Sequence record: NC_020077.1
Length of the DNA: 64,000 bases
Strand: one strand, 5' to 3'
Part shown: positions 1-45,942 of the stretch, piece by piece
How positions within the stretch are numbered: position 1 is the stretch's first letter
Layout: the number at the start of each line of letters is the position of its first letter
Notes under the pieces: generated by a model
What the model was told of the DNA's origin: nothing
Seen by the model: only the letters and a program-made list of their open reading frames with translations
Database searches by the model: none
Made by a program: the position numbers and the translations under genes

Positions 1-1130
1 CTACCTTTTTCTTAGTCCTGCTATCCTCTTACGTTATACCACCCCTTTTTACGTAAATTTTACGTTTTCCCCTTATTTTGTATTAATAAAGTTTTTGGAA
101 AAATATTTCAAAGACAAATTTTATTTCAATTTTGATCAAAATTCGAATTGACGTGCCGACATTTTCATTTTTTTATACTTCTTCTTTTAAAATTTGGATT
201 AAAAGGAAAAACCTAACGTTAATTTAGGTAAATTTAGAGAAATTGTATTATTAATATTTCACTGAATTTAATTCTCGATTTCATGAGTGATTTCATAAAG
301 TATCTAATATACGATATTATTTCTATTCCTAATAAAAGTTTTTATGATATCAACTTTATATATTCATTTTGAATTTATATATTATCAATACGCTTTTCCT
401 ATTTTTTTATCAATACCTATAGTTTTTTGAATTCAAATAATAAAATTTTTGTGACATATAGTTATTTTCATAAATAATGATATATAGTTATTATTGAAAA
501 TAAGAATATCAATTATAAAAAGTTTTCATGATAATTATTATATCTATTTGATTTTGTAATTAATGATGATATCATTATTTCTAAAAATAGTTGATATAAT
601 AATTTTTATATTTAATTTTTTAAGTGAATAAGTTATAAAATTGTTTTCAAAAATTTTTACATTTTGTTTTTATAGTAATTATTATATCTAGTTTTTATTA
701 TAAATATATATAATTATGATATTATAATTTTTATAATAATTATTTTTTATTGTAAATATGATAATCATGAAATTAACTGATTTGAAAATATATCTCATTT
801 ATAATAAAAAATTCAAATTATATAATTTGAGTGAAATTGAAATTAAAATATGTATAAATGATAAAATTGAATTTTTATAATATCGATATTAAATTTTTTA
901 TCTTAACTTATATGAAAAAGTTTATATCAACTTAAATATGAAAATTCAATTTTCATATTTCAGATTATCAATATAGTTTCAATTTCACATATATTAAATA
1001 AATTCAAAGGTATAAATGTTATCAGATAAGTTTATACTTTTGTATTTATGTTTAATCATATCATTATCATGATATAAATAGTTTATAATATCACTTATTT
1101 TATAATGATAAATAAAAACTCGAAATTCCT
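1..1130. other. Very AT-rich non-coding region, candidate replication origin
   Basis: No ORF in the track; long A/T runs; perfect 16-bp palindrome AATTTTGATCAAAATT at 128-143; precedes about 35 kb of co-oriented plus-strand genes. Origin role is inference. Confidence 0.4.
1063..1121 (+). repeat. 59-bp upstream repeat, copy 1
   Basis: ATTATCATGATATAAATAGTTTATAATATCACTTATTTTATAATGATAAATAAAAACTC; recurs at 2388, 3450 and 4430. Confidence 0.9.
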
Positions 1131-1184
1131 ATCCCTTATTTACTTTCAAGTTAATCTAATGATCTATTGACTTAATCACGTAAA

Positions 1185-1208
1185 TTTCACGATGATAATA
1201 CCGTAAAT
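1185..1208 (+). promoter_or_regulatory. Class I operator palindrome, copy 1 (consensus TTTTACGG-N8-CCGTAAAA)
   Basis: TTTCACGA-TGATAATA-CCGTAAAT; TATA box TTTAAATA at 1222, 13 nt downstream. Confidence 0.8.
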
Positions 1209-1263
1209 GATTAGAAAAAGATTTAAATATCCCTTTTCATAAAAGATATATTAGGAGTAAAAT

Positions 1264-1749
1264 ATGGCCGCACCCGAATTAGAAAACCCCGCCCAGAATA
1301 ATGCGGGGGAAAATTCGAATGAAGTAAATCTTGAAGAAATAATAAAAATAATATACGAAATGCGTAAAATCAGGGAGACGCTAGAACAATTAAAGCAAGA
1401 AGATCTTAATAGCGTTAAAAAACTAATTGTAAAAATTGATAATCAAGTAAAAAAATTAAAACAATTAATTGATGAGCGTGATGATTTACCAGTCATGAAA
1501 ATGGATATTAGCAGTTTAGCTAATTTAACGCAAACTTTAGTTAATAAAATTGTTAATCAAGAAATTAAAATAGAAACTTTATTTTTATTAATTACAGATT
1601 TAGTAAAATTAGTAACTGAAATAAAAACTAAACTAGAAATTAAATACAATATCGATATGAGCGCGGAAGAGATATACAAACTAGCAAGAGATATAGCATA
1701 CGACGTGGATGATTTTATATATTTCTTATATTCTTATTTAAATAATTAA
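1264..1749 (+). CDS. Hypothetical coiled-coil protein with shared N-terminal leader
   Basis: 161 aa; GGAG RBS; heptad-like L/I/K/E pattern; leader MAAPELENPAQNNAG. Confidence 0.75.
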   Translation: MAAPELENPAQNNAGENSNEVNLEEIIKIIYEMRKIRETLEQLKQEDLNSVKKLIVKIDNQVKKLKQLIDERDDLPVMKMDISSLANLTQTLVNKIVNQEIKIETLFLLITDLVKLVTEIKTKLEIKYNIDMSAEEIYKLARDIAYDVDDFIYFLYSYLNN

Positions 1750-1750
1750 A

Positions 1751-1803
1751 CTTTTTTTTTATTTTTGTTTTATACTTTTTCTAAACTTTTTATTATGTTA
1801 TTT
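1751..1803 (+). terminator. T-rich terminator-like repeat, also at about 2984-3041
   Basis: TTTTATTTTTGTTTTATACTTTTTCTAAACTTTTTATT follows both ORF1264 and ORF2589. Confidence 0.6.
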
Positions 1804-1825
1804 TAATTTTATTATGTTATTATAA

Positions 1826-2300
1826 TGTAATGCCGCCCGGCCATTATATCATTATTATATATTGTAATTTTGCCGCAGGCCCATCGCCGCATTTTACATT
1901 ATTATTATATTATACGGGCCCGCCGCCCCGCCATTATTCATTATATAATATTATAATTGCCGCCCCCGCCGCCTATAATTCATTATAATAATATATAATA
2001 ATGAATATGCCGCCGCCTAATCATTATTATAATGTAATGCTGGCCCGCCGCATTTAACATATATTATAATATAATAATGAATATGCCGCAGGCCGGCCCA
2101 TTATTCATTATTATATTATAATTGCCGCAGGCCTTTATCATTATTATAATAATGCCGCCGCCGGCCTGCCGCCGCATTAATCATTATATTATAATAATAA
2201 AATGTATAACTAATATTCATTATTATATATTATATATTGAATATGCCGCCGCGCCTATGCCGCAGGCCCGCCGCCGCCCTAATTACATTATTATAATATA
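1826..2300 (+). repeat. AT/GC mosaic satellite, block 1
   Basis: About 10 GC-rich islands (GCCGC, GCCGCAGGCC) separated by nearly pure A/T spacers such as CATTATTATAAT. Confidence 0.85.
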
Positions 2301-12286: not shown

Positions 12287-12336
12287 GTTCTGTAAATCTA
12301 CCAAATTGTTATGACAATTCTATAATTTTACCAAAG
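12287..12336. repeat. Dispersed intergenic palindrome (core AATTGTTATGACAATT, 12304-12319)
   Basis: Related cores at 14385, 20867, 22654, 28233, 39537, 52401 and 60917. Confidence 0.75.
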
Positions 12337-12386
12337 CCCGTTTTTCCCTTGGGTTTTTATGACTATAATGCTATGTTTATATACGA

Positions 12387-12431
12387 TTTTACGTTTTTGG
12401 CTATGTAGCTCATGGTAGAAAGTTTTATAAG
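12387..12431 (+). promoter_or_regulatory. Class II promoter TTTTACGT-N21-TAGAAAGTTTTATAAG
   Basis: The exact 16-mer is also at 16009, 20980, 22767 and 26545; variants at 58497 and 58832. Confidence 0.85.
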
Positions 12432-12467
12432 CTTCAATAACAAAGTATAAAATCGGTGGTTTAAAAT

Positions 12468-13476: not shown

Positions 13477-14253
13477 GTGATGATAGTCAGACTAGTGTCA
13501 TATTCACCTGATGGTGAAAAGGTAGTAGCTATTGCGGCTAAAATGAGTAGGAGTAGGAAAGGTTGGGATTATCATGAAAAAGAAATGACTGATGAAGAGA
13601 TTGAGACATGGATTAGGGATGCAATTCTACATGGGTATTGGTCTGTGTTAGAGCATTCAGTTTATACTTTTTCTATTGAGGGAATTTCTAGGGTTGCGTC
13701 TCATCAGCTTGTTAGGCATAGAATAGCCTCTTATACGCAAATGTCTCATAGGTTTGCTAGGCCAATAGATGAATATTATAAACCAATAATACCTACTAAC
13801 ATTAAAAAGAGGGATGTTCATGAGCTAGTTAACAAAGCTTACAATAATGCTTATGAAATTTATTATGAATTGTTGAAGAGCGGAATACCCGAAGAGGATG
13901 CACGTTATGTTTTACCAAACGCTGTTAATACAAACATCGTAGTAACTATGAATGCTAGGGAATTATATAATTTCTTTTCCCTAAGGCTCTGTTCAAGAGC
14001 TCAATGGGAAATTAGAGCAATTGCATGGAGAATGCTAGAGGAAGTAAAGAAAGTTCACCCAAGATTATTTAGATATGCTGGGCCAAATTGCATAATACAT
14101 GAGAATTTCATAAGAAATGAGTATATAACTTTAGATGATGTGCTTAAAAATCACAATATAGAGTTTATATCTCAAAGATGTATTGAAGGAGTTAATAGGG
14201 ATGGAATTATAAAATGCATCATTAACTCACGTGGAGTTATTGACTCGAGGTGA
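13477..14253 (+). CDS. thyX: Flavin-dependent thymidylate synthase
   Basis: [27 protein letters not shown] (RHRx7S motif), [14 protein letters not shown]. Confidence 0.97.
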
Positions 14254-14272
14254 AGTGATGAAAACATATTTA

Positions 14273-14312
14273 CGAATTTCGAACTTGTGCTATATACAGG
14301 GACTTCGAACTT
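14273..14312 (+). repeat. 40-bp dispersed element, copy 1
   Basis: CGAATTTCGAACTTGTGCTATATACAGGGACTTCGAACTT. Confidence 0.9.
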
Positions 14313-14484
14313 TTATTGCTAAAATTTTCCCTTTCTTAAATCTCATGAGGACGAGAAAAATTCGTGACGGTAGCAAATTTGCAGAAATGTCATGCCAGTT
14401 CTACAATTTTACCAAATCCCCCTTTTCCCCCTTTTTAAGTCTAGATAAGTCTAAAAGGGAAAAGATGAATAGAGGTAAGAAGAG

Positions 14485-15360
14485 ATGGCAGACACAATGA
14501 AGATCGTTTTAGGACTTTCTGATAACAGAGTGAAGTTATGGGAGTTAGGTGTGCCATTAATGATTAATCAGTTGGTGTGGGACAGTGTAGAATGGGAAAA
14601 TGAAACGTGGGTAGATTCTGGTGGCTATCAAATAATGGTTAAAAAAATGCAGATTAGTGTAGATGCCGTATTGGATAAATACAAGAGGCTTGATGCAGAC
14701 TATTACATTAGCCTCGATATACCTGCAACACCTTGCGAAAAGCCTTCAGAGCTTAATTTCAAGCATTTTGAGTACCTATACACGAGACTGGATAAGAATA
14801 TAATACCAGTCATTCACGCTTATGATGTTGAAAGTATTAAAAAGGCTATTGATTTCTACTCTCAATATACGGATTATATCGCATTTGGTGGGATAGTTCC
14901 ACCATCTCTTAATAAGGTAGCTAGCCAAAAGCTAGCAGTTGCAATGTACCGCCTTGTTAGGAAAGAATGGAAGGGTAAAATTCACGTTTTAGGTGCTGGT
15001 TCTCCTTTCATGAGAAAGGTTTTTTATGATGCTGATAGTGTTGATACATCAACTTATAGAGTAAAGGCAATACATGGTATGGTGTTATTGCCTGGAAAAG
15101 GAGAAAGGTATGTTGGAGAGAGAAAAATAAGTTGGGGGGCTAGACGAATTAGTGAAGATGAACTTGAATCGCTAAAGGCTTTTCTAGAGAAAACTCACTA
15201 TCCATTTCCTATTAGGTTTGATAATTGGATGGATAGATCACTTGTTAACGCATGGGTTTTGTTACACAGTGAGTATGAGGAAGATAATCCTCTTATCAGA
15301 TATGCACACAACATAACAGACCCAGAGGCTGAGATAAATGAGTTATGTAGAAAGCTGTGA
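14485..15360 (+). CDS. dpdA: DpdA-like DNA-guanine transglycosylase (7-deazaguanine insertion)
   Basis: TGT-fold motifs DSGGYQ, LDIP, PVIH, FGG, HVLG and DSVDTST; lacks the CxCxxC zinc site of tRNA TGTs. Confidence 0.85.
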   Translation: MADTMKIVLGLSDNRVKLWELGVPLMINQLVWDSVEWENETWVDSGGYQIMVKKMQISVDAVLDKYKRLDADYYISLDIPATPCEKPSELNFKHFEYLYTRLDKNIIPVIHAYDVESIKKAIDFYSQYTDYIAFGGIVPPSLNKVASQKLAVAMYRLVRKEWKGKIHVLGAGSPFMRKVFYDADSVDTSTYRVKAIHGMVLLPGKGERYVGERKISWGARRISEDELESLKAFLEKTHYPFPIRFDNWMDRSLVNAWVLLHSEYEEDNPLIRYAHNITDPEAEINELCRKL

Positions 15361-15895
15361 ACACTTAGAGAAATATCTTGGCTCAAATAATGAACCAATA
15401 ATAAAAAAGCCCGGCTTTGACCCATTCCAACACCCTGTCGTAAGGAAATGGCATGAGTACTTTCTCAATAACTGGCATTCCAAAAAAGAAATAGCGCTTT
15501 TACTGCCCTGCACATCAGTTAAGCCTTATAATAGGTCAGCTACTCATAAATTAGCATACTCGTTATTGAGAAAGTATAAACTTGAGGATAAGGTTCAGGT
15601 TTACTCTGTCTCCGAGCCGATGTTGTTAGTCCCTAGAGAGTTAGAGAACTGTTACCCTTTCAATTCTTATGATTATCCTCCTTCTTTAATGACTGAAGAA
15701 GAAAAACAAGAGTTCATCAGCCTACTTTCCATTGCACTCTCTCATGTCCACAATATCCATAAGAGAATAATCGCAGTTTTGCCTAAACATCATTACAAGA
15801 TAGTTTATGAGGCTTCTAAAAACATCCCAATCGAACTTTATCCTTATGGCAAATTAGCTTTTAAAACGATAGCAAATGTTATAATGAAGATATGA
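15338..15895 (+). CDS. DUF5591 / ArcS-like (archaeosine synthase-type) protein
   Basis: LLLPCTSVKPYNRSATH and SEPMLLVPRELENCYPFNSYDYP match the PCxxxKPYxxSxxH and VPRELE..YP..YD motifs; overlaps dpdA by 23 nt. Confidence 0.8.
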   Translation: MSYVESCEHLEKYLGSNNEPIIKKPGFDPFQHPVVRKWHEYFLNNWHSKKEIALLLPCTSVKPYNRSATHKLAYSLLRKYKLEDKVQVYSVSEPMLLVPRELENCYPFNSYDYPPSLMTEEEKQEFISLLSIALSHVHNIHKRIIAVLPKHHYKIVYEASKNIPIELYPYGKLAFKTIANVIMKI

Positions 15896-15979
15896 ACAAC
15901 TATAGACAATTCACCAATTTTACCAAAGCCCCTTTTTTCCCTTGTGTCTTTTCTTACTACCGTTTATGAAGTTACGTTA

Positions 15980-16024
15980 TTTTACGTGTTTGGTTATGAA
16001 GCTCATTATAGAAAGTTTTATAAG
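15980..16024 (+). promoter_or_regulatory. Class II promoter
   Basis: TTTTACGT at 15980, TAGAAAGTTTTATAAG at 16009. Confidence 0.85.
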
Positions 16025-16056
16025 TTTAAAGTGTAACAGAGATAATCGGTGGGAAA

Positions 16057-16377
16057 ATGTCAGAGGTGGAGCGCCTAAAACCTGTAACCTTTAAGTGTGA
16101 AGATAGTCTGTTTTTAAAGCTAGAGGAAGAGGCTAAAAAAGCTAACGTCGCTAAAACTAAAATTATAAGAGAGGCATTAGCGAAGCTTTTACAACATGAC
16201 ATTGAGGAAATAAGGGAGTTAAGTAGAGGAACTCCTCCCTATTCAGGCAAGCGTGTAGTTTCAATAAGGCTTCCCGAAAGCCTTAATACTCAGTTAGAGA
16301 TTGCTGCAGAAAAAATAAGGTCTAACAAGAGTGACCTGATAAGGGCTGCTTTAGCAGCCTACTTCAGGTTAGTGTAA
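16057..16377 (+). CDS. Two-RHH protein
   Basis: VTFKCEDSLFLKLEEEAKKANVAKTKIIREAL and VSIRLPESLNTQLEIAAEKIRSNKSDLIRAAL. Confidence 0.85.
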   Translation: MSEVERLKPVTFKCEDSLFLKLEEEAKKANVAKTKIIREALAKLLQHDIEEIRELSRGTPPYSGKRVVSIRLPESLNTQLEIAAEKIRSNKSDLIRAALAAYFRLV

Positions 16378-16379
16378 GG

Positions 16380-17450
16380 GTGATGAAAATGGCGTATTTA
16401 TACTTGCAGCTACATAAATCTTTATTAAAGAAAGTAAAGAAAGAAGCGTCACGTTTAAATGTAAAACGAAAACTTTTGATGAGTGCTGCAATTCAAGCGT
16501 TTGTCGAAAACCCGCCAGAAACCATAAATCTACCGCCAGACTTGAATAACGGATTTGAACTGACAATTGGCGTTACCTTAGAACTGCCTAAAGATGTTAT
16601 AGAAAAGATTTATTCTTACACTATATCAAAAGCTCTTTCGGTAAAAAAAGTAGCGGAGATAGCGATAACTACTTTTCTTAGCCTTTCTGATGAACAGAAA
16701 ATGATCTATATAGATAAGGAGATAAAAAGACTTGAAGAGAAGAGAAAGAGAAAACTAAGCGAAGAGCGTATGTTTCAATTTCTGGAAAGTATTGCTTCAA
16801 AAGATCCTTCTCGATCAGTTCGAATAAGTTTTAAATGTGTAGATGACTTACATAAACTACTTGAAAACGAAGCACGTGAAAGGGGAACAACAGCGAGTGA
16901 GCTTATAAGAGGTGCTGTTGAAGAATTTTTACAAAACTACTATAAGGGCAAGATAAAAATAAGAAAGCTGTATGAGGCTGCTAAAGACTCGCATTATAGC
17001 AAAGCTGGGGACAAAGTATATGACCTAAAAGTACCTACATATATTCTATTACATTTAATGGAAATAGCTGATAATGTGAAGTTGTCTGTGGCTATGCTTA
17101 TTCGTCTTGCCATAATGAGATACTTGAAGCTGGTTGACATGCAGCCGCGAAAACGAGTCAGATTCGCATGTGCGGCTAGTCTTATTTTAATGATAGAGGA
17201 GGAGGTTAAAAAAACTAACACCGCAAAAGACGCAATTATAAAGGAGGCAGTGAAACAACTTTTACAGCATAGTGTCGATGAGATAAGGGAGTTAAGCAGA
17301 AAAACTTCTCCCTATTCGGGCAGCTATGAAGTTTTCATAAAGCTTCCTGAGAGCCTTGTCGTACAACTAGATGCTATTGTAAGAAAAGTAAGGACTAGTA
17401 GAAGCAATCTCATACGGACTGCATTGGCAGCTTATTTCAAGTTAGTGTAA
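16380..17450 (+). CDS. Six-RHH protein
   Basis: Six strand-helix-helix units; the last two are paralogous to ORF16057 and ORF21029. Confidence 0.85.
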   Translation: MMKMAYLYLQLHKSLLKKVKKEASRLNVKRKLLMSAAIQAFVENPPETINLPPDLNNGFELTIGVTLELPKDVIEKIYSYTISKALSVKKVAEIAITTFLSLSDEQKMIYIDKEIKRLEEKRKRKLSEERMFQFLESIASKDPSRSVRISFKCVDDLHKLLENEARERGTTASELIRGAVEEFLQNYYKGKIKIRKLYEAAKDSHYSKAGDKVYDLKVPTYILLHLMEIADNVKLSVAMLIRLAIMRYLKLVDMQPRKRVRFACAASLILMIEEEVKKTNTAKDAIIKEAVKQLLQHSVDEIRELSRKTSPYSGSYEVFIKLPESLVVQLDAIVRKVRTSRSNLIRTALAAYFKLV

Positions 17451-17452
17451 GG

Positions 17453-18547
17453 GTGGCAAAGATGGCATATTTACACTTTATAATGCGCAACTCTCTACTT
17501 AAAAAGGTAAACGAAGAAGCTACCCGCTTAAATGTAAAACGAACACTTTTAATGAAAGCTGCAATTCGGGCGTTTATTGAAAACCCTCCAGAAACCATAC
17601 AACCGTTACCAAATGCAATCGGCGGATTTGGACGAAAAGAAACAACACAAATTTTCTTAACACTGCCAGAAGACACTTTAGAAAAGATTTATTCTTACGC
17701 CACTGCAAAAGGACTATCAATAAGAAAGGTAGCGGAGAAGGCAGTAGCTGATTTCCTTAACTTGTCTGATGAACAGAAACTAATTTATATAAATAAGGAG
17801 ATGGAAAGACTTATAGAGAAGAGAAAGGGAAAACTAGACAAAGAGTCTACACTACAATTGCTAGAGCCCGAGGCTTCAAAAGATCCTTCTCTGCTGGTTC
17901 CAATAAGTTTTAAATGTATAGATGATTTACGTAAACTACTTGCAAAAGAAGCACATGAAAGAGGAACAACGGCGAGTGAACTTGTAAGAAGAGCTGTTGA
18001 AGAATTTTTACGAAAACATGGTGATAACCTTGAGGAAATCAAAAAGCTGCATGAGGCTACTAAAGACTTGTATTATAGCGAAGTTGAGGACAAAATATGT
18101 ACTTTAAAAATGCCAGCGTATATGGCAGTACAATTGGCAAAAATAGCTAATAAGATGAATGTGTCTAAGTCTGCGTTAATTCGCCTTGCGATCGTGAAAT
18201 ATCTGAACCTGAGTGACACAAAGCCACAAAAACAAACAGAGCCACAAAAACACATAAGCTTCGGGTGTGCGGCTAGCCTTGTTTCAATGTTAGAAGAAGA
18301 GTCTAAAAAAGCTAACACCGCAAAAGCTGCAATTGTAAGGGAGGCAGTAACGAGGCTTTTACAGCATAGTGTTGATGAGATAAGAGAGTTAAGTAGAAGA
18401 AATCCGGCTTGTTCAGCCGACTATACAGTTTCCGTAATGCTTCCTGAGAGTCTTAATACTCAGCTAGATATTATTGCAGAAAAAGTAAGGACTACTAAGA
18501 ACGATCTGATGAGGACTGCATTAGCAGTTTATTTCTGGTTGGTATAA
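17453..18547 (+). CDS. Six-RHH protein
   Basis: Colinear paralog of ORF16380. Confidence 0.85.
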   Translation: MAKMAYLHFIMRNSLLKKVNEEATRLNVKRTLLMKAAIRAFIENPPETIQPLPNAIGGFGRKETTQIFLTLPEDTLEKIYSYATAKGLSIRKVAEKAVADFLNLSDEQKLIYINKEMERLIEKRKGKLDKESTLQLLEPEASKDPSLLVPISFKCIDDLRKLLAKEAHERGTTASELVRRAVEEFLRKHGDNLEEIKKLHEATKDLYYSEVEDKICTLKMPAYMAVQLAKIANKMNVSKSALIRLAIVKYLNLSDTKPQKQTEPQKHISFGCAASLVSMLEEESKKANTAKAAIVREAVTRLLQHSVDEIRELSRRNPACSADYTVSVMLPESLNTQLDIIAEKVRTTKNDLMRTALAVYFWLV

Positions 18548-18558
18548 GGGTGATATAA

Positions 18559-19770
18559 ATGGCATCTATCGAGTTCATTATCCCTGAAACATTATTAGAT
18601 AAAGTAAAGGAAGAGGCAAAACGATTTTATGTTAGTGACAAACTTCTGATGAAGGCTGCTATTATTGCATTTATTGAAAATTCTACTGATGCTATAAAAC
18701 CATTACCACTTAATTATAATAAAAAAGAAGAAGAGTTGAAACTTATTCGCTTAGACTTACCAGAAGATATTGCGCAAAAGGTTCATCTTTACAGCAAGAT
18801 AAAAGGATTTCCGATTCGAAGGATCATTAGTAGTATGGTAGATAACTTCCTTAATCTTAATGATGAACGGAAAAAGTTCTATATAGATGAATTAAAAACA
18901 ATACTACCTAGCCTTAAAGTTGGTGCTTGGCGTATAATAAAACTGAAAGAAGCTTTAGCTTCAGGAAATCTTGATTCGCTAATTCAAGTAAGCTTTAAGT
19001 GTAATAAAGAGTTATACGTACTGCTTAAGGACGAGGCATTGAGAAAACATATAATGATAAATGTACTTGTAAGGCAGGTTGTTGATGATTTTGTGCAAAA
19101 GTATGGTGATAATCATGAGGTAATAAAAAAGATGCATAAAGTTGCTAATCACCTCTTTTATGGAAAGATTAACGATAGGGCTCTCGATGTAGAGTTGTCC
19201 GCACGTGTCTTACTGCAATTGGAAAAAATTTCGAGACAGACGCTAGTTTCTAAAAACGATATTATTCGCCTTGCGATTATGAGTCATTTGAATTTACTGA
19301 ACGAGAGCGTCCTTGAACGGCCAATTTTTATAAAAAACGATCTACCACAACAAAATAATAAAGACAACCAGGCACAGACAGATAGTTTTATTAATATACT
19401 GTTGCCAAATAAACTTTACAATTTATTAAAGAGATATGTAATGCCTAACTACGAAGCCAATAAGGAAAGAGAGATTAAGTCTGTAGTCAGTAATGTTGTG
19501 ACAGAAGTAATAACACAGTGGGCAAAAGAGCGTTTTTCCGAAAGCGGCGATGTTGAAACTTACGTAGTATGGCAAATAATTTTGGGCGATTTAAAAATGA
19601 GCTTTTACCCTAGCCTAAAAAGAGGCACAATAGTAAAGAAGCAAGATATCCTAGATGCGATGAAGAATATAAAATATGTATTAGATGAAACAAGGTTATT
19701 TAAAACCTTTAAGGAACGCGGTTATCTAGAGGAGATCGATAATGATAATGTTAAGATTCTACTTCTGTGA
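18559..19770 (+). CDS. Five-RHH protein with C-terminal winged-helix-like domain
   Basis: Four RHH units, an extended fifth (FINILLPNKLYNLLKRYV), and a C-terminus ending FKERGYLEEIDNDNVKILLL. Confidence 0.8.
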   Translation: MASIEFIIPETLLDKVKEEAKRFYVSDKLLMKAAIIAFIENSTDAIKPLPLNYNKKEEELKLIRLDLPEDIAQKVHLYSKIKGFPIRRIISSMVDNFLNLNDERKKFYIDELKTILPSLKVGAWRIIKLKEALASGNLDSLIQVSFKCNKELYVLLKDEALRKHIMINVLVRQVVDDFVQKYGDNHEVIKKMHKVANHLFYGKINDRALDVELSARVLLQLEKISRQTLVSKNDIIRLAIMSHLNLLNESVLERPIFIKNDLPQQNNKDNQAQTDSFINILLPNKLYNLLKRYVMPNYEANKEREIKSVVSNVVTEVITQWAKERFSESGDVETYVVWQIILGDLKMSFYPSLKRGTIVKKQDILDAMKNIKYVLDETRLFKTFKERGYLEEIDNDNVKILLL

Positions 19771-19785
19771 GTTTTTCGCCAACTT

Positions 19786-20865
19786 TTGGTGATGAAGATG
19801 GCATATTTAGACTTTTATATGCATAATTCTTTATTAAATAAAGTAAAGGAAGAAGCAAAACGGCTTAATGTAAGTGACAAACTTCTGATGAAGGCCGCTA
19901 TTATTGCATTTGTTGAAAATCCTACCGATTCTATAAAACCATTACCAGATGGTAATCATAACAACGGAAAGGTAGTAAGAGTTATCATAAAGCTTTCAGA
20001 AGACATTATCAATAAATTTATACTTTATGCGAAGTCCAAAAATGCTACAATTAAAGAAGTTGCTGAAAATGCGATAGCTAACTTCCTTACTCTAGGCGAT
20101 GAGCAGAAAAGGCCCTATATAGAAGAAGAAAAAAGGCAGTTAGCCGAAGCTAGGAAAAAATTAGCTGAACTTAATAAAAAGGAAATGCAAAAGAAGTCTT
20201 CAACACAGCTGCAAGCTGATATAGGGCCAAACAGCCTTATTATAATGTCCTTTAAATGCAATCCTAACTTATACAAACTACTTGAAAATGAGGCAATGAA
20301 AAGACGCGTAGCAGTTGCAGAGCTCATAAGAAATGCTGTTGCGGATTTTCTACAGAAATATGGGAATAATTATGATGAAATTATTAGATTATATTTTGCG
20401 GTCGATCTCTTCTTTTCTAAAAATAATACGAGTAATATTGGTACTAAAATATGTATCGTAAAAATGCCAGCATATATGGCATCAGAATTAGAAAAAATTG
20501 CAAGACAAACATCAGTCACAAAAAGTGGTGTTATTCGCCTTGCGATTATGAACCATTTGAATTTGTTAAATGGAAGTGTCACAGAACAACAGAAGATTAC
20601 ACAAAATGAGGCAGCAAATGATCCGCCTAATGATCCGCCACAACAAAATAATAAAGATGAACTCTTACGAGCAAGTCGTTTTATTAGTGTGTCTTTACCA
20701 GAACCACTTTATAATTTACTAAAGAAATATGTAATGCTTAAGTATAATGTTAATAAGGAAAGAGAGATTAAGTCTATAGTCAGTAACATTATAGCAGAAG
20801 TATTGGCACAGTGGTCACAAGAGCATTTCTCCAAAAGCGGCGATGTTGAAACTCGTGTTCGGTAA
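19786..20865 (+). CDS. Five-RHH protein, C-terminal domain missing
   Basis: Matches 18559 and 21351 up to GDVET, then stops (GDVETRVR*). Confidence 0.8.
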   Translation: MVMKMAYLDFYMHNSLLNKVKEEAKRLNVSDKLLMKAAIIAFVENPTDSIKPLPDGNHNNGKVVRVIIKLSEDIINKFILYAKSKNATIKEVAENAIANFLTLGDEQKRPYIEEEKRQLAEARKKLAELNKKEMQKKSSTQLQADIGPNSLIIMSFKCNPNLYKLLENEAMKRRVAVAELIRNAVADFLQKYGNNYDEIIRLYFAVDLFFSKNNTSNIGTKICIVKMPAYMASELEKIARQTSVTKSGVIRLAIMNHLNLLNGSVTEQQKITQNEAANDPPNDPPQQNNKDELLRASRFISVSLPEPLYNLLKKYVMLKYNVNKEREIKSIVSNIIAEVLAQWSQEHFSKSGDVETRVR

Positions 20866-20950
20866 ACCTTGTCATGTCAGTTCTGCAAATTTACCAAAGT
20901 CCCTTTTTCCCCTTGTGTCTTTTCTTACTACCGTTTATGATTTTGCGTAA

Positions 20951-20995
20951 TTTTACGTATTTGACTATGAAGCTCATGGTAGAAAGTTTTATAAG
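20951..20995 (+). promoter_or_regulatory. Class II promoter; 20890-21028 duplicates 15920-16056
   Basis: TTTTACGT at 20951, TAGAAAGTTTTATAAG at 20980. Confidence 0.85.
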
Positions 20996-21028
20996 CTTAA
21001 ATGGTCACAGTAATAGTCGGTAGGAAAA

Positions 21029-21349
21029 ATGTCAAGTAAAGAGTATTTAAAACAAACAAGCTTTAAGTGTGAGGATAGTCTGTTTTTAAAGACTGAGGAA
21101 GAGTCTAAAAAAACTAATACTACAAAAGCCACAATTGTAAGGGAGGCAGTGAAACAACTTTTACAGCATAGGGTCGATGAAATAAGGGAGTTAAGTAAAA
21201 AAACTTCTCCCTATTCAGGTGGCTATATAGTTTCCATAATACTTCCTGAGAGTCTCAACGCCCAACTAGATGCTATTGCAGGAAAAGTAAGGACTAGTAG
21301 AAGCAATCTCATACGGACTGCATTAGCAGCCTATTTCAGGCTAGTTTAG
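21029..21349 (+). CDS. Two-RHH protein
   Basis: 106-aa paralog of ORF16057; its 3' part is nearly identical in DNA to the end of ORF16380. Confidence 0.85.
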   Translation: MSSKEYLKQTSFKCEDSLFLKTEEESKKTNTTKATIVREAVKQLLQHRVDEIRELSKKTSPYSGGYIVSIILPESLNAQLDAIAGKVRTSRSNLIRTALAAYFRLV

Positions 21350-21350
21350 C

Positions 21351-22634
21351 GTGATGAGAATGAAGTCTCTGATCTTCATCATCCCTAACGCCTTGTTAGA
21401 TAAAGTAGTAGAAGAGGCAGAACGGCTTGGTGTATCTGGTGCGCTTTTGATGAGGGCGGCTATTATTGCATTTGCCGAAAATCCTATCTACTTTATAGAA
21501 CCACTGCCACCCAATTATAATAAAGAGGAGTTAAAAGGAATTTCTTTAAAATTACCCGAAGATATTATAAAGAAGATTCATCTTTATGCCAACTCAAGAG
21601 GATTTTCGATCAGGAGAATAGTTTGGAGCATGATAGATCACTTTCTTACTCTTGATGATGAGCAGAAAATGTTTTATATAAAAAAAGTAAAAGAAATATT
21701 ATCTAGAACTAGGATTGGGCGAAAACGCAAAACAAAACTACAAGAGACTATTGTTTTTGGAGATCTTAACGCGTTAGTTGGGACAAGCTTTGCGTGTAGT
21801 AACGAGTTGCACAACCTCATTGAGAATGAAGCAATAAAAAAACACATAACAATAAGTGAGCTTATAAGAGAGACTATTAATGAGTTTTTGAAAAAATATA
21901 GTAATAATTTTGAGGAAATCAGAAAGCTGCATGAGACTGCTAGCAATTTATTTTCTGGAGAGGATCCTCAAAGAGTGATCACTGTAAAGTTACCTGCACA
22001 TGTTTTACTGCAATTGGAAAAAATTTCGGGAAAGACACTAGTTCCTAAAGGCATTATTATTCGTCTCGCAATTATGAACCATTTTAATTTACTGAATAGA
22101 ATCGTCACAAAACAACGGAAGGCCACACAAAATGAAGCAGCAAATGATCCGCCTGATGATCCGCCACCACAAAATTATAAACCCAAACCTAGATGGGCAG
22201 GAGGTTTTGTCAGTGTGTTGTTACCAGAACCACTTTATGACTTACTGAAAGAGTATGTAATGCTTAAGTATCATCGCGGTTTTATACTAAGCATTAATGA
22301 AGTCATTAGTGAAGTTACGATTAAGTTTGAAGTTAGCGAAATTGCAACAAAAATATTGAAACAGTGGGCAAAGAGACGATTCTCTGGAAAGTCTGACGTT
22401 CAAACTTACGTAGTATGGCAAATAATTTTGGGCGATTTAAAAATGAGCTTTTACCCTGGCCTAAAAAGAGGCACAATAGTAAAGAAGCAAGATATTCTAG
22501 ATGCGATGAAGAATATAAAATTAAAATCTGTCATAAACAAAACGGAGTTGTTTGAGGAGTTGTTTGAGATATTTAAGGAACGCGGTTACCTAAAGGAGAT
22601 CGATAATGATAATGTCAAGATTTTACTTCTGTGA
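21351..22634 (+). CDS. Five-RHH protein with C-terminal winged-helix-like domain
   Basis: Paralog of 18559; 3' DNA (about 22404-22634) is nearly identical to about 19560-19770. Confidence 0.8.
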   Translation: MMRMKSLIFIIPNALLDKVVEEAERLGVSGALLMRAAIIAFAENPIYFIEPLPPNYNKEELKGISLKLPEDIIKKIHLYANSRGFSIRRIVWSMIDHFLTLDDEQKMFYIKKVKEILSRTRIGRKRKTKLQETIVFGDLNALVGTSFACSNELHNLIENEAIKKHITISELIRETINEFLKKYSNNFEEIRKLHETASNLFSGEDPQRVITVKLPAHVLLQLEKISGKTLVPKGIIIRLAIMNHFNLLNRIVTKQRKATQNEAANDPPDDPPPQNYKPKPRWAGGFVSVLLPEPLYDLLKEYVMLKYHRGFILSINEVISEVTIKFEVSEIATKILKQWAKRRFSGKSDVQTYVVWQIILGDLKMSFYPGLKRGTIVKKQDILDAMKNIKLKSVINKTELFEELFEIFKERGYLKEIDNDNVKILLL

Positions 22635-22737
22635 GTTTTTGGTAAATCTACAAAATTATCATGGCAATTTGGTAATTTTGGTGAAGTCCCTTTTTTCCCT
22701 TATGTTTTTGTGAGTATCGTGTTAAATTAACATGTGA

Positions 22738-22782
22738 TTTTACGTTTTTCACTATTGAGTTCATGATAGAAAGTTTTATAAG
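22738..22782 (+). promoter_or_regulatory. Class II promoter
   Basis: TTTTACGT at 22738, TAGAAAGTTTTATAAG at 22767. Confidence 0.85.
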
Positions 22783-22814
22783 CTTAAATGAACACAATAA
22801 TAATTGGTGGTAAA

Positions 22815-23621
22815 ATGTTTGAGATCCAATCCGAATCCGAAAGAACACAACTCCATTTAAAGGTGAAAGAAAAGACTTTAGAAGACTTAGTATATTACAC
22901 GTTAAGAAACAGCGTTACGTTATATAAGAAAGGCCTATTGCCTTTCGCATTTTACAACTACAAAATAGATAGGATAAAGAAAGATATGACAAAGATTTAT
23001 CAAACAACATATGCAATAACTTTAAGCGTTAGACTATATAACACTGCCAGCAAAGAAAAACTAAAAATAATGTTCACTTTCATTTTCGAAATAAATGTCG
23101 ATCATAGCAGCGAGTACTTGTTTGACCCAGATGCGTCTGAAGATAGATTATTGATAATAACAATGCCAGGCTTATCTCCACTAATTTATGACTTCGCTGA
23201 CTTTATCGAAAGGGCTGACTTTACCTATGATCCTCTAGCTTATGTTGAATCAAATAAAGAAGTTAAGGAGAATATGATAAATATAGCAATGAAGAAGCTA
23301 AAAAGATACACTATACCTATAGGCGATGAGGCCTTTATTGAGGCTGATGTGTTTTATGCAGATAGAAAAATAGACTTAGATGCTGCTAGTATGTTAGGGA
23401 GTAATAATTGGACACTTACAGAGAAAAAAGTTAATTTGGCTGATTACAATGATGATATACAGGCTGTGATAAAGGCTTATGCTGAAGAGTTAAATAAAAT
23501 GTTTCATGACTTGATACGAAACGGAGAAACTAAAATATTTGCTGTAAAGTATAAGGATAAATTGACCATGCATCTTATAGCACCTGTCTCTAAAAAGGAA
23601 AATTACCTATTCGCCACGTAG
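22815..23621 (+). CDS. Hypothetical protein (start moved to ATG 22815)
   Basis: GGTGGT RBS before the ATG; long ORF. Confidence 0.75.
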   Translation: MFEIQSESERTQLHLKVKEKTLEDLVYYTLRNSVTLYKKGLLPFAFYNYKIDRIKKDMTKIYQTTYAITLSVRLYNTASKEKLKIMFTFIFEINVDHSSEYLFDPDASEDRLLIITMPGLSPLIYDFADFIERADFTYDPLAYVESNKEVKENMINIAMKKLKRYTIPIGDEAFIEADVFYADRKIDLDAASMLGSNNWTLTEKKVNLADYNDDIQAVIKAYAEELNKMFHDLIRNGETKIFAVKYKDKLTMHLIAPVSKKENYLFAT

Positions 23622-23631
23622 GTGACCCATC

Positions 23632-24615
23632 ATGCCTTATTTAACGTTTAGAATCCCACGAGGTTTGATAGAGATAATGAAAACACTTCAAGAGGAGCGA
23701 AAAGAAACTCAAGACCTAATAGTCACTAGGGCCCTGGAGAGATTTTTTGAAAAGTACAAAAATGAAAGCTTCGGAATTGCGCATCGAGAAGTAAAGAAAA
23801 TAGAGCCAAAGCTGATTACTGGCCCACTGCGACTTGAGAATCTAGTTACTGTTTCATTACCAGATGATATGGTAAAGAGGCTAAACGAGTACATGAAACA
23901 GAATAAAGTGAGCTCTAGAGATTTAGTTGTTTCTACCGCGCTTACTGATTACCTTTATGATCTTACCATGAGAAAAAGTGAGAAGGTGGAATTTTCTTTT
24001 TACATCAACAGTGAGCTTTATAGAAAGCTTAAGGATATAGTACGATTTACTACTAAGGGCGTTAAGGATATTATACCAGACATAGTAAAATGGTTTTTAG
24101 ATAATTACGGAGACCGTGACCTTGCTCAGATAATTAAGGATAAGATAGAAAATAAGGATGAAATATACAAGGGTAATACGGCTGTCTACACAGTGATACC
24201 ACGGGGCCTTAAGAGACGTTTATATAATTATGCGCATAAGCATGGATTTTCGCTGTTAACTGCTCTTCGTGTTGCGATAATTCTGTACTTAAAAAAGGTT
24301 GAAGAGGGTAAGATAAAGCTTAATGAGACTAAGATTGAAGAAGTAAATCAAGATACGCAAAAGGAAAAACAGATAAACGAGATTGTTGAATCACTTGATA
24401 AATTGCAAAAAGAGCTTAAAGAACTAAAGGAGAAAAAAGAAGGAAATGATTCACATGCTCGTCTCGTTAATACTAAACTAGAGGTCATAAAGTTAGGCAT
24501 TAAAAGCGGTGCCGATGCTGATGAGATTATGAATGTAGTAAAGACAATTGATAAAATGAAGGATGAAGCAAAGGAAAAGAAGGAGAAATTGGAAAAGGAT
24601 AATAATTTGACATAA
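23632..24615 (+). CDS. Four-RHH protein with C-terminal coiled coil
   Basis: YLTFRIPRGL, VTVSLPDDM, FSFYINSEL and VYTVIPRGL units. Confidence 0.8.
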   Translation: MPYLTFRIPRGLIEIMKTLQEERKETQDLIVTRALERFFEKYKNESFGIAHREVKKIEPKLITGPLRLENLVTVSLPDDMVKRLNEYMKQNKVSSRDLVVSTALTDYLYDLTMRKSEKVEFSFYINSELYRKLKDIVRFTTKGVKDIIPDIVKWFLDNYGDRDLAQIIKDKIENKDEIYKGNTAVYTVIPRGLKRRLYNYAHKHGFSLLTALRVAIILYLKKVEEGKIKLNETKIEEVNQDTQKEKQINEIVESLDKLQKELKELKEKKEGNDSHARLVNTKLEVIKLGIKSGADADEIMNVVKTIDKMKDEAKEKKEKLEKDNNLT

Positions 24616-26229: not shown

Positions 26230-26547
26230 ATGAGTGGGCACACATTAGAACTTATACTAAAACCGATTGATTTTCGTAAAGTTACAACAAAAGAAGAAAA
26301 AGAAGCTATAAAAAAATATGTTAATAGAAATTATGAGATAATAGAAGTTAATAAAAATGAGCAAGAAATAGAAATAAAAATCACATATAATAAGCTACCA
26401 GATACTGTTTTAATCAAAGATAGCTTAATAAATGATTGTGTATTAAATTACAAGATTGGTAGACTCGTAGTCAGACGTAAAGCAATGTATATTAAACTTG
26501 TTCCTGGAAAGCTTGTGGAACGTAAATCAGTCTCTACTTCATTATAG
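26230..26547 (+). CDS. Hypothetical protein (probable ATG 26230)
   Basis: ORF with an upstream TATA-like sequence. Confidence 0.6.
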   Translation: MSGHTLELILKPIDFRKVTTKEEKEAIKKYVNRNYEIIEVNKNEQEIEIKITYNKLPDTVLIKDSLINDCVLNYKIGRLVVRRKAMYIKLVPGKLVERKSVSTSL

Positions 26548-26592
26548 AAAGTTTTATAAGTTTAAATGTTGATCATATTTATGGTGGGAAAA

Positions 26593-45211: not shown

Positions 45212-45247
45212 TAAAGCTTAATTATTTTTTCTTTCCTACTTTTAAAT

Positions 45248-45361
45248 ATGGCGAAAAAGGATAACAAAAAACAACAAGCCACAAGAAGAACTGAGAATGT
45301 GGTTATCGCAAGAGTAGATCCTCTAATGGTTACTAAAAGTCTAGAACAAGCAAAAGACTAA
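45248..45361 (+). CDS. 37-aa mini-paralog of the ORF45394 N-terminus (missed by the ORF track)
   Basis: MAKKDNKKQQATRRTENVVIARVDPLMVTKSLEQAKD*; upstream sequence is duplicated too. Confidence 0.55.
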   Translation: MAKKDNKKQQATRRTENVVIARVDPLMVTKSLEQAKD

Positions 45362-45393
45362 AGATTTATTATTTTTCTTTCCTATTTTTAATT

Positions 45394-45942
45394 ATGGCCA
45401 AAAAGGATAAGGAAGAAGAGCAAACCGCAAAAGCGTCTGATAGACCTATTGTTGCAAGACTAGATCCGCCACTGGTTATTAGGAATCTTGAACAGGCAAC
45501 TGCAACAACAAGGGTACCTATAGACAACATGACAGAAAAGGATTTACAAACTGCTAACCAGCTTGTGGCAACAGTTGCAAAGGATATCGAAGAATTGGTA
45601 AGGTCTGTTTATCTTGAAGGTTGGCAGAGATTCTCAATATCTGCATCAACACTAGAAGCAGACTTTAGCAGAATACTTACATCGATTCTCGAGGTATTAG
45701 AATCATACCTCATCGAAATAAGGAAGTACATTCAAGCTAGACTAAAAGAGGCACTAGAGGCAAGAGATGTTGAAAAACTAAGGCAATATGGCTATATGCT
45801 AACTATTTTACAAAGGGCTATCGTCATCGCAATTTATAACATATTACAATCTATCGTGGGTAAAATAAAGGTCAACTTGCCTCTAACATATAACTCGCAA
45901 GAATATAACCATACTGTGCTTGGAATTGCACACCTAGATTAA
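45394..45942 (+). CDS. Hypothetical helical protein
   Basis: 182-aa ORF. Confidence 0.75.
   Translation: MAKKDKEEEQTAKASDRPIVARLDPPLVIRNLEQATATTRVPIDNMTEKDLQTANQLVATVAKDIEELVRSVYLEGWQRFSISASTLEADFSRILTSILEVLESYLIEIRKYIQARLKEALEARDVEKLRQYGYMLTILQRAIVIAIYNILQSIVGKIKVNLPLTYNSQEYNHTVLGIAHLD

Follow-up and report, generated by a model that had tools for sequence, protein, structure and literature searches.

Organization of the RHH gene locus

Eight genes of Sulfolobus virus STSV2, annotated in the databases as hypothetical proteins, raise the question of what is built, and what might be read on DNA, when several ribbon-helix-helix (RHH) units are strung together in one polypeptide. The window analyzed here comprised the first 64 kb of the viral genome (NC_020077.1; GenBank JQ287645, same coordinates). 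The genes, STSV2_17-23 and STSV2_25, lie exactly where a preliminary description of this DNA had placed them. In four of the eight, the GenBank start is a few codons downstream of the one given there. Three tight gene runs with intergenic gaps of 10-27 nt were identified, each behind a copy of a promoter cassette, the first of which also harbors two blocks, CCCTTTTTTCCCTT and the invariant ATTTTACGT. STSV2_24 was not recognized as an RHH protein by Pfam and PHROG searches, though it lies inside the interval 16057-24615, and relative L006 lacks it. The features of the locus are as follows.

Promoter cassette copy 1: 15880..16056, plus strand; about 170 bp, ahead of STSV2_17-21
BRE/TATA core TAGAAAGTTTTATAAGTTTAAA: 16009-16030, plus strand; within cassette copy 1
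STSV2_17: 16057..16377, plus strand; 106 aa, one two-unit RHH module (residues 8-48 and 66-106)
STSV2_18: 16389..17450, plus strand; 353 aa, six RHH units in three modules (AlphaFold2, Foldseek, Pfam)
STSV2_18 module 1: 16389-16688, plus strand; followed by an ER/K-rich 38-aa helix
STSV2_18 module 2: 16812-17135, plus strand; RHH units 3-4
STSV2_18 module 3: 17145-17447, plus strand; RHH units 5-6
STSV2_19: 17462..18547, plus strand; 361 aa, six RHH units (homology to STSV2_18, Pfam)
STSV2_20: 18559..19770, plus strand; 403 aa, four RHH units (two modules), RHH-like segment (residues 275-326, low confidence), C-terminal winged-helix domain (homology to STSV2_23 and alignment)
STSV2_21: 19798..20865, plus strand; 355 aa, four RHH units and RHH-like segment, without winged-helix domain (Pfam RHH_1 7.3e-9)
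Promoter cassette copy 2: 20866..21028, plus strand; ahead of STSV2_22-23
STSV2_22: 21029..21349, plus strand; 106 aa, single two-unit RHH module (Pfam RHH_1 5.4e-9)
STSV2_23: 21360..22634, plus strand; 424 aa, four RHH units, disordered Pro/Asn-rich linker, RHH-like two-helix segment (residues 281-341), winged-helix domain (residues ~344-421; AlphaFold2)
Promoter cassette copy 3: 22638..22814, plus strand; ahead of STSV2_24-25
STSV2_24: 22815..23621, plus strand; 268 aa, acidic (pI 5.7), 10 nt upstream of STSV2_25
STSV2_25: 23632..24615, plus strand; 327 aa, four RHH units (two modules, residues 1-223) and a K/E-rich, coiled-coil-like C-terminal tail

A family built from a two-unit module

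STSV2_17-23 are clear paralogs in which a two-unit module of about 105 aa recurs (module against module blastp, E 1e-12 to 1e-46), and STSV2_25 resembles the first four units of STSV2_18 (blastp E 2e-8). All 16 modules could be aligned colinearly. This block occurs once per polypeptide in STSV2_17 and STSV2_22, twice in STSV2_20, 21, 23 and 25, and three times in STSV2_18 and STSV2_19. The latter two are 58% identical over their full length (Pfam RHH_1 1.9e-14 for STSV2_19), with an 18-nt repeat at 18218-18252 (TRF) lengthening the linker that joins module 2 to module 3 in STSV2_19. STSV2_17, the counterpart of module 3 in the six-unit proteins, was detected by Pfam (RHH_1 2e-10, RHH_3 2.9e-10) and matches phrog_876, a 'transcriptional repressor' (1.8e-27). 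The BFVD model K9MCE0 (106 aa, 57% identical) fits this protein and not STSV2_22, which shares 64% identity with STSV2_17 and 74% with STSV2_18 module 3. STSV2_20 is 54% identical to STSV2_23, from whose model its domain layout was read by homology, while the short form represented by STSV2_21 is kept in relatives L012 and P0029. STSV2_25 matches phrog_9615, and the BFVD model Q684E8 (326 aa, the same length as STSV1 ORF26) matches the STSV2_18 model (E 3.7e-10). The RHH proteins are basic (pI 9.1-9.6), and five to seven paralogs are retained per genome, with gain and loss between strains.

The preliminary description had counted about 35 units, distributed over the eight proteins as 2, 6, 6, 5, 5, 2, 5 and 4. 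Their multi-unit RHH nature was confirmed, but Pfam, BLAST and AlphaFold2 support 2, 6, 6, 4, 4, 2, 4 and 4 units (32), and the fifth units of STSV2_20, 21 and 23 are unconfirmed. Six of the eight proteins scored above the Pfam RHH_1/RHH_3 cut-offs, whereas scans with single units gave weak support for STSV2_25 as well as for units 1 and 2. The module profile matched CopG (1b01, E 2.8e-5), pRN1 ORF56 and SvtR, all in register. Segments formerly taken for fifth units do contain an RHH-like strand/helix-A motif, but no strand was predicted there, pLDDT was low and the unit-5 profile matched no RHH. Dimerization of five-unit members through an unpaired unit is likewise unsupported. The C-termini of STSV2_20 and STSV2_23 instead form a winged-helix domain, for which the STSV2_23 C-terminus gave Foldseek matches to cullin WHB and ORC winged helices.

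Adjacent units form single-chain dimers in the models

AlphaFold2 modelled STSV2_18 (pLDDT 85) with exactly six strand-helix-helix units, the strands comprising residues 2-9, 59-66, 143-150, 209-216, 254-261 and 313-320, and STSV2_23 (pLDDT 73) with four. Since pTM was only 0.34-0.45, these models do not define how the modules are placed relative to one another. Strand pairing was deduced from superpositions and linker lengths, not from contacts in the coordinates. The best PDB matches of the modules by Foldseek were chains E, F and G of the F relaxosome (probability 1.0, TM 0.62-0.76, rmsd 2.3-3.5 Å, about 100 columns), which we take to be TraY, judging from chain length, chain number and the accompanying paper; DndE, VirC2, single-chain Arc and AvtR ranked lower. 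This superposition supports pairing within one chain, and the earlier proposal that adjacent odd and even units pair intramolecularly agrees with the compact single-chain RHH dimers seen in the models. Module 3 of STSV2_18 and the independently modelled 106-aa paralog (K9MCE0) superpose with an rmsd of 0.9 Å. The sequences repeat with a period of one two-unit module, odd units resembling odd and even units even ones (hhalign probability 87% for units 3 and 5, 89.5% for units 4 and 6). Units 4 and 5 of STSV2_18 are separated by only 8 residues, a spacing too short for these two to pair, judging from single-chain Arc.

The predicted base-contacting residues change fastest

It had also been claimed that the strands vary while the helices are conserved, and every strand string quoted in support was found exactly as written. 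The claim held quantitatively for STSV2_17-23 and their relatives but failed for STSV2_25, whose strands are conserved among relatives and not hypervariable in the entropy test. The CopG register was used to fix the DNA-facing positions beforehand, 18 of them in the six-unit proteins, strand positions -2/-4/-6 aligning with CopG T8/T6/R4 in the in-register profile alignment. In seven of the eight proteins, these predicted base-contact residues are the fastest-changing positions. Within the six-unit proteins their entropy is 1.37 bits compared to 0.34-0.65 in the other classes, about 2.5 times that of every other class, linkers included (Mann-Whitney p about 1e-5), and the three columns with the highest variability along the entire protein are contact sites. 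Accordingly placed residues of STSV2_19 and STSV2_18 are 22% identical, as against about 60% elsewhere. Several residues on the outward face of the strands (I, F, M, L, E, D) are hydrophobic or acidic and hence less typical RHH base contacts than R/K/N/Q/T/S.

Positive selection on strand codons had been suggested as a check. With parsimony counting on one tree, which ignores recombination among paralogs, dN/dS at the contact positions of the six-unit proteins was 1.30 compared to 0.32-0.47 elsewhere (permutation p 0.005); the bootstrap interval of this ratio (0.80-2.98) includes 1, so that relaxed constraint and positive selection are not separable. The result was replicated for units 1-4 in 31 genes (1.28 versus 0.38-0.47, inter-helix loop 0.79; p 0.002). 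For module 3, dN was raised (p 0.0003) while dN/dS (0.85) showed no significant rise (p 0.089). Strands of the two-unit protein and the variable portion of the promoter cassette belonging to it showed no co-variation.

Relationship to known RHH proteins and proposed mode of binding

The strand-helix-helix unit of the STSV2 modules is that of CopG, Arc, MetJ, SvtR and pRN1 ORF56. However, the chains of canonical RHH repressors carry a single unit each and pair as symmetric homodimers on palindromic or repeated subsites, whereas the STSV2 dimers would be covalent and asymmetric. Closest in structure is TraY of the F plasmid (PDB 9f0x-9f12), a bacterial conjugation accessory factor in which two RHH units per chain make up a complete dimer, even though its sequence identity to the STSV2 modules is only 11-17%. 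As a monomer containing a whole RHH dimer, TraY lines up in three copies, forming a train that covers about 30 bp of oriT (PMC12117103). This trio, side by side on oriT, corresponds to a three-module STSV2 protein without the covalent links, but each TraY chain has one module and the train is held by protein-protein contacts.

Among crenarchaeal viruses, AvtR (gp29 of the lipothrixvirus Acidianus filamentous virus 6; PDB 4hv0) likewise has a single chain with two RHH motifs in tandem, and its size and layout are those of STSV2_17 and STSV2_22. To our knowledge, hypervariable strands have not been reported for it, and it does not occur as four- or six-unit chains like STSV2_18-21, 23 and 25. 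Monomeric AvtR binds DNA and regulates its own and a neighboring promoter (PMC5569661). It was not recovered by phmmer of STSV2_17 against PDB, and Foldseek matches to 4hv0 were weak (probability 0.47-0.60, rmsd 9-11 Å). Many viral proteins of ~95-120 aa match the STSV2 module structurally, and the module profile retrieved 410 proteins at E<=1e-3, which, among the matches listed, mostly have one or two units. The aCcr1/SIRV2 gp21 clade, too, comprises small RHH transcription factors, encoded by Sulfolobales and by their viruses. Its viral members arrest host division, a phenotype also caused by STSV2 infection, but aCcr1 is a single unit of the 58-aa class, and its authors found no member of this clade in STSV2, whose RHH proteins fall on other branches. 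In the literature searched, no description of chained one, two or three double-RHH modules with fast-changing base-contact residues was found.

We propose that the building block is a single-chain RHH dimer of ~105 residues, in which an odd and an even unit, joined by a 17-24-residue linker, would fold back on each other so that their strands form an antiparallel ribbon, as in TraY and AvtR. The asymmetric ribbon of each module would insert into one major groove. RHH dimers normally assemble on operators cooperatively, as trains; chained modules may be the covalent counterpart of such trains. A three-module protein could read up to three subsites over roughly 30 bp, their spacing being set by the rigid ER/K-type helix between modules 1 and 2 and the variable 8-26-residue linker between modules 2 and 3. 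Each protein would read one long asymmetric site. Polydactyl C2H2 zinc-finger arrays, by analogy only, also string small DNA-reading modules together covalently, keep the scaffold conserved while a few recognition positions are hypervariable, and expand as tandem paralogs. Their fold is unrelated, however, and in STSV2 the reading unit is a unit pair within position-specific modules separated by long linkers. A TALE-like code of one unit per base is not supported by units that are position-specific paralogs, not interchangeable, two strands of which would read one groove jointly. The earlier suggestion that host defence promoters or viral repeat elements may be the targets is unsupported as well.

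Alternative explanations

The proteins might be ordinary autoregulators of the shared cassette and a few viral operators, chaining merely replacing cooperative dimer assembly and strand variation reflecting relaxed constraint or drift with the operators. Autoregulation is common among RHH regulators such as AvtR and SvtR (PMC5569661), a highly conserved cassette precedes every gene run, and both the dN/dS interval and the conserved strands of STSV2_25 fit this explanation. Relaxation alone, however, would not predict outward strand positions that vary more than disordered linkers, with dN/dS about three times the background. Moreover, the cassette core is the same across strains while strand residues differ, and the retention of several paralogs per genome, with gain and loss between strains, also speaks against it. 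We regard this explanation as unlikely.

Even less probable, in our opinion, are two further explanations. RHH partition proteins bind iterated repeats, and multivalent, basic proteins, one with a coiled-coil-like tail, could, like omega or ParG, cover or bridge viral DNA that is repeated or AT-rich, such as the AT-rich repeat region at genome positions 1-2000, for replication, segregation or packaging. Such centromere- or chromatin-like binding would involve little base specificity, though, whereas the focus of variation on presumed base-contacting residues argues for specificity; besides, no partition ATPase gene adjoins the RHH genes and TRF found no periodic repeat of module spacing. Just as improbable is an anti-defence or antitoxin-like function in which the variable ribbon face of an RHH scaffold engages rapidly evolving proteins of the host as part of an arms race. 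A dN/dS of ~1.3 on one surface patch recalls host-virus interfaces, part of the ribbon-face residues are hydrophobic and copy number turns over between strains. Yet the variable positions are those of the canonical CopG base-contact register, the proteins are basic, no toxin or defence partner gene adjoins and the RHH genes do not figure among the predicted STSV2 anti-defence candidates.

It is therefore the reading as sequence-specific, covalently chained AvtR/TraY-like DNA binders that we hold to be rather likely, although we infer binding, site length and differences in specificity from sequences and models. Fast change of three outward residues per strand on a conserved scaffold indicates that, in the STSV2_17-23 lineage, DNA specificity most likely varies from paralog to paralog and from strain to strain. 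Taken as a whole (chained single-chain RHH dimers, diversifying contact residues, probable regulators), it is fairly probable that STSV2_17-23 and STSV2_25 constitute a virus-specific family of predicted DNA-binding proteins. On our best reading, all eight genes would be expressed from the repeated promoter cassette, the recognition residues of STSV2_17-23 diversify, and the encoded proteins, predicted transcription regulators, probably act on viral genes and possibly also on genes of the host.

Locus and gene organization

By megablast, the interval was assigned to STSV2 (JQ287645 / NC_020077, 76,107 bp, Bicaudaviridae), whose coordinates are the same as those of the window. The eight array genes, STSV2_17 to STSV2_23 and STSV2_25, are annotated as hypothetical and all carry the deposited remark 'PHA02938 superfamily'. 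Their open reading frames and all recognition-strand strings quoted in the preliminary description were recovered from the sequence exactly as given. Within each run, the genes are separated by 10-27 nt. STSV2_24 (window 22815-23621), located between the ribbon-helix-helix (RHH) genes, is unrelated to them and encodes an acidic protein of 268 aa without family. It is constantly found just 5′ of the STSV2_25 homolog, the sole exception being the relative contig L006, where it is missing.

In the PHROGs database, STSV2_17 matched phrog_876 'transcriptional repressor' (1.8e-27), while the STSV proteins are grouped in phrog_9615, which bears a function-less label. The genes do not resemble type II antitoxin genes, since beside the array only RHH paralogs, STSV2_24 and, downstream, a gene for a polysaccharide-synthesis membrane protein were detected, and no cognate toxin. 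CopG_antitoxin matches in Pfam were weak and span the RHH part only. Directly upstream of the array (window 13480-15895) lie genes for ThyX, a TGT-like protein (queuine tRNA-ribosyltransferase) and a DUF5591 protein, which could form a nucleotide or deazaguanine modification module. Elsewhere, window 1-2000 is AT-rich (21% GC) and contains several tandem repeats, among them one at 1885-1999 whose 42-bp unit has GC-rich ends. Another tandem repeat, of 146 bp, is located apart from these at window 45212-45499.

Two-unit modules and domain assignment

All-against-all BLASTP revealed STSV2_17 to STSV2_23 to be paralogs; what recurs in them is a module of approximately 105 residues comprising two units, one odd and one even. 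STSV2_17 matched residues 250-353 of STSV2_18 (56% identity, E 5e-35), residues 146-249 of the same protein (30%, E 2.5e-10) and residues 6-99 of STSV2_21 (E 8e-7), and the match of STSV2_25 was to the N-terminal ~210 residues of STSV2_18 (E 2e-8). The 16 modules present in the window are all colinear over 121 columns and share a small conserved motif in the inter-unit linker. RHH_1 or RHH_3 exceeded the curated Pfam cut-off in STSV2_17, 18, 19, 21, 22 and 23 and remained under it in STSV2_20 and STSV2_25. Taken singly, 22 weaker units (41 aa) were mostly sub-threshold, units 1 and 2 and those of STSV2_25 being weak, and nearly all of their matches were RHH-type. A PDB search with the module profile yielded CopG, ORF56 and SvtR. 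Taking an RHH unit as a profile-recognizable strand-helix-helix element of ~40-45 residues, the repeat is of this type, with units 1 and 2 and those of STSV2_25 assigned through paralogy and structure models. The module is moreover a single-chain tandem RHH, since STSV2_17 and STSV2_22 are 106-aa proteins of two units and the same block recurs 16 times.

AlphaFold2 models were calculated for STSV2_18 and STSV2_23 as monomers, the STSV2_18 alignment comprising 16 sequences. STSV2_18 (mean pLDDT 85) showed exactly six strand-helix-helix units. STSV2_23 (pLDDT 73) showed four units, a disordered linker, two helices at the place of the supposed fifth unit and a C-terminal domain. As pTM amounted to 0.34-0.45 in both models, the modules resemble beads on a string whose mutual orientation is undefined. 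Of the about 35 units initially counted, 32 were supported, namely 2, 6, 6, 4, 4, 2, 4 and 4 in gene order. The fifth units of STSV2_20, 21 and 23 were left out of this count because their profile gave no RHH match in the PDB; nor did it resemble the profiles of the other units, and the corresponding segment of the STSV2_23 model consists of two helices.

The C-terminal domain of STSV2_20 and STSV2_23 is a winged helix according to the STSV2_23 model, in which it has the order helix-strand-helix-helix-strand-strand (pLDDT 82-90) and, by Foldseek, resembles cullin WHB and ORC winged-helix domains (prob 0.97-1.0, TM 0.57-0.61). No sequence match to this domain was obtained in Pfam or PDB, and pentatricopeptide matches were rejected as repeat artefacts. 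STSV2_21 has no winged helix, a short form that is kept in two other sequences. A 38-residue helix rich in Glu, Lys and Arg, which the STSV2_18 model places between units 2 and 3, parts modules 1 and 2 in every four- and six-unit protein and has the appearance of a rigid spacer formed by one alpha-helix. The K/E-rich tail of STSV2_25 (window 23632-24615) looks coiled-coil. In the six-unit proteins, modules 2 and 3 are joined by a linker whose length, 8 to 26 residues, changes with copies of an 18-nt (6-aa) repeat.

Features within the encoded proteins (window coordinates)
16689-16811: Glu/Lys/Arg-rich helix, STSV2_18 residues 101-138
18218-18252: 18-nt linker repeat, columns 253-276 of alignment A1
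19537-19767: winged helix, C-terminal ~80 residues of STSV2_20 (Foldseek)
22389-22631: winged helix, C-terminal ~80 residues of STSV2_23 (Foldseek)

Predicted pairing of adjacent units

For both models, the top PDB matches in Foldseek were chains E, F and G of the F-plasmid relaxosome (prob 1.0), on which they superimposed over ~100 columns with a TM of 0.62-0.76 on the target and an rmsd of 2.3-3.5 Å. Number and length of these chains fit three TraY molecules. TraY is a monomer holding an entire RHH dimer in one polypeptide, and three copies form a train on ~30 bp of oriT (PMC12117103). The lower-ranked matches DndE, VirC2, permuted single-chain Arc and AvtR are all single-chain RHH dimers as well. 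In a comparison with predicted structures of viral proteins, STSV2_18 module 3 superimposed on the own model of the 106-aa paralog at 0.9 Å (TM 0.93); further matches were a four-unit STSV1 protein and a model having the length of the STSV2_25 ortholog.

Profile comparison paired odd units with odd and even with even (units 3 and 5, 87%; units 4 and 6, 89.5%), though global per-unit hhalign has little power on 40-residue profiles and is informative for the odd/even pattern only. Stand-alone proteins invariably consist of one odd and one even unit. Judging by the linkers of single-chain Arc, the gap of 8 residues separating units 4 and 5 is too short for a pairing of these two. Together, the superpositions on single-chain RHH dimers and the linker lengths indicate that units are paired within the module in the predicted structures.

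Variability of the recognition strands

In CopG, the bases are contacted by R4, T6 and T8, i.e. by residues 6, 4 and 2 positions before the helix-A N-cap, and the alignment of the module profile with CopG keeps precisely this register. From it, 18 strand positions per six-unit protein were fixed before testing. Coding DNA was taken from STSV1, STSV4 and ten STSV-like contigs of hot-spring MAG assemblies. Among 15 distinct six-unit genes, the predefined positions had a mean entropy of 1.37 bits, compared to 0.51 in core-facing strand residues, 0.58 and 0.53 in the two helices and 0.65 in the linkers (Mann-Whitney p ~1e-5, predefined versus other positions). Over the full protein length, variability was highest in three columns, residues 7, 260 and 314 of STSV2_18, all of them predefined positions. 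Between STSV2_18 and STSV2_19, identity was 22% at these positions and ~60% elsewhere.

The same 15 genes gave a dN/dS of 1.30 (bootstrap 0.80-2.98) at the predefined positions against 0.32-0.47 in all other classes, dS being similar (permutation p 0.005). For units 1-4 of 31 genes of the six-, four- and five-type, the ratio was 1.28 against 0.38-0.47 (p 0.002), the inter-helix loop reaching 0.79. In module 3 (23 genes), entropy was 1.94 against 0.44-0.80 and dN was raised (p 0.0003), but dN/dS, at 0.85, showed no significant increase (p 0.089). The positive selection on strand codons considered in the preliminary description is not proven by these ratios, since counting by parsimony on one tree without a recombination screen is crude and the bootstrap interval spans 1. 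The contrast of conserved helices and varying strands described earlier holds in quantitative terms for the STSV2_17 to STSV2_23 family. It does not extend to STSV2_25, whose strands are near-invariant across six relatives and which may be a conserved, housekeeping member of the family.

Promoter cassette

A cassette of ~170 bp precedes four genes of the window. It contains a 22-nt BRE/TATA core, TAGAAAGTTTTATAAGYTTAAA, of which the window has five copies, against a chance expectation of none, and which is identical across all STSV-like loci fetched. Near-invariant in these loci is also the block ATTTTACGT, situated ~45 nt upstream of the core. Two cassette subtypes can be distinguished, one ahead of the two-unit gene and one ahead of STSV2_24. 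A sigma-70 promoter and terminator scan was discarded as inapplicable to an archaeal virus.

Cassette and core copies (window coordinates)
12290-12467: ~170-bp cassette before STSV2_12
15880-16056: ~170-bp cassette before STSV2_17
20866-21028: ~170-bp cassette before STSV2_22
22638-22814: ~170-bp cassette before STSV2_24
26545-26566: further copy of the 22-nt core, preceding STSV2_28

Distribution and turnover of the array

The unit composition of the array is 2-6-6-4-(4+winged helix) in STSV1, where ORF25 and ORF26 follow, 2-4-(4+winged helix) in STSV4 and 2-6-4-(4+winged helix) in L006, which has no STSV2_24 homolog; the array of another relative contig, L012, is like that of STSV2. In the collections searched, the full-length family was confined to STSV-like sequences. 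IMG/VR contained STSV1 and STSV2 only, the JGI metagenome search gave no relative, and 185,579 species-representative genomes held none of the STSV family nor of that of the metagenomic protein P0037; as a seed for such a scan, the alignment of modules was too divergent. Searching 1.84 billion representative proteins with the two-unit module profile resulted in 410 matches at E<=1e-3, and among those listed and detected by the unit model most have one or two units. Two top matches, P0034 and P0064, were rejected as false positives, being repetitive surface proteins.

Longer RHH chains are rare yet present. The 10.6-kb contig L016, from a 'Pyrobaculum sp.' MAG bin, carries four adjacent multi-RHH genes (226, 226, 114 and 244 aa) and probably belongs to another archaeal virus or plasmid. 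P0037, P0041 and P0046 constitute a separate, unrelated metagenomic family with six RHH units per chain as judged by eye, and more than two units were apparent in P0044, P0051 and P0059. The L016 array and the metagenomic six-unit proteins suggest that the chaining principle is not unique to STSV.

Multi-RHH loci outside STSV
L016 6524-9588: second, divergent RHH array
L017 515-1732: P0037, six RHH-like units judged by eye

Discussion

RHH proteins are normally small homodimers. To our knowledge, the covalent RHH proteins described so far, i.e. TraY, AvtR, the knotted VirC2, DndE and MJ0366, hold a single dimer only. In architecture and fold, but not beyond these, the STSV2 module corresponds to the single-chain RHH dimers TraY and AvtR: neither protein was found by a phmmer search of STSV2_17 against the PDB, and the PDB matches of the module profile are single-unit RHH proteins. 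In the literature searched, the closest statement ascribes to STSV2 'several divergent members' within a viral family of RHH proteins, and there was no description of two or three chained dimers, of a variable multi-gene block or of change focused on the contact register. New are chains with two to three RHH dimers, encoded in a block of five to seven genes that differs between virus strains, and the finding that the presumed base-reading residues are the fastest-evolving sites. The earlier comparison with zinc fingers is valid as a description of principle, while that with TALE arrays, implying a one-repeat-one-base code, found no support.

Beyond the architecture, predicted fold, evolutionary pattern and gene organization established here, a mode of action can be proposed. 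Like TraY and AvtR, each module would place an asymmetric ribbon in a single major groove, so that proteins with one, two or three modules would read ~10, 20 and 30 bp, with the linkers setting the spacing. If the modules bind DNA, variation of the linker repeat would alter the spacing of subsites. The residues at -2, -4 and -6 relative to the helix-A N-cap would give paralogs and strains differing specificity, and the array proteins would regulate transcription.

As to the targets, the shared cassette is an obvious candidate for autoregulation, but inspected by eye, the strands of the two-unit proteins did not co-vary with the variable stretch of their own cassette. Plain autoregulators with drifting strands are a rather unlikely explanation of the array. 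The array proteins are basic (pI 9.1-9.6), which was counted in support of the DNA-binding reading, as indirect evidence together with the variability at the CopG contact register. That they are architectural or centromere-like binders is very unlikely. Little probability is likewise given to protein-binding anti-defence factors, and the array genes are absent from the published anti-defence gene lists for STSV2.

Host promoters are possible targets as well. Infection with STSV2 represses cdvA, ESCRT-III and vps4 and makes giant cells, the responsible factor having been declared unknown. In other bicaudaviruses, the same genes are repressed by viral RHH proteins of the aCcr1 type; STSV2 is published to be without aCcr1 homologs, its RHH proteins falling outside the aCcr1/gp21 clade. 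Transcript timing for STSV2 was not found in the literature searched. It is conceivable, albeit unlikely, that STSV2_17 to STSV2_23 are naturally evolved 'polydactyl' RHH proteins, covalent chains of asymmetric dimers in which diversifying selection on the recognition residues retargets paralogs to different long composite sites, at least one of them in host promoters (cdvA / ESCRT-III). If this were true, the factor behind the cell-cycle arrest and gigantism caused by STSV2 would be identified, and designed DNA binders could be built on a new, thermostable scaffold. Already the confirmation of DNA binding would mean that concatenation can turn the RHH fold, as it does zinc fingers, into readers of long sites. 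It would also offer a hyperthermostable modular scaffold and, for STSV2, which lacks aCcr1, provide candidates for the repressor of the host division genes.
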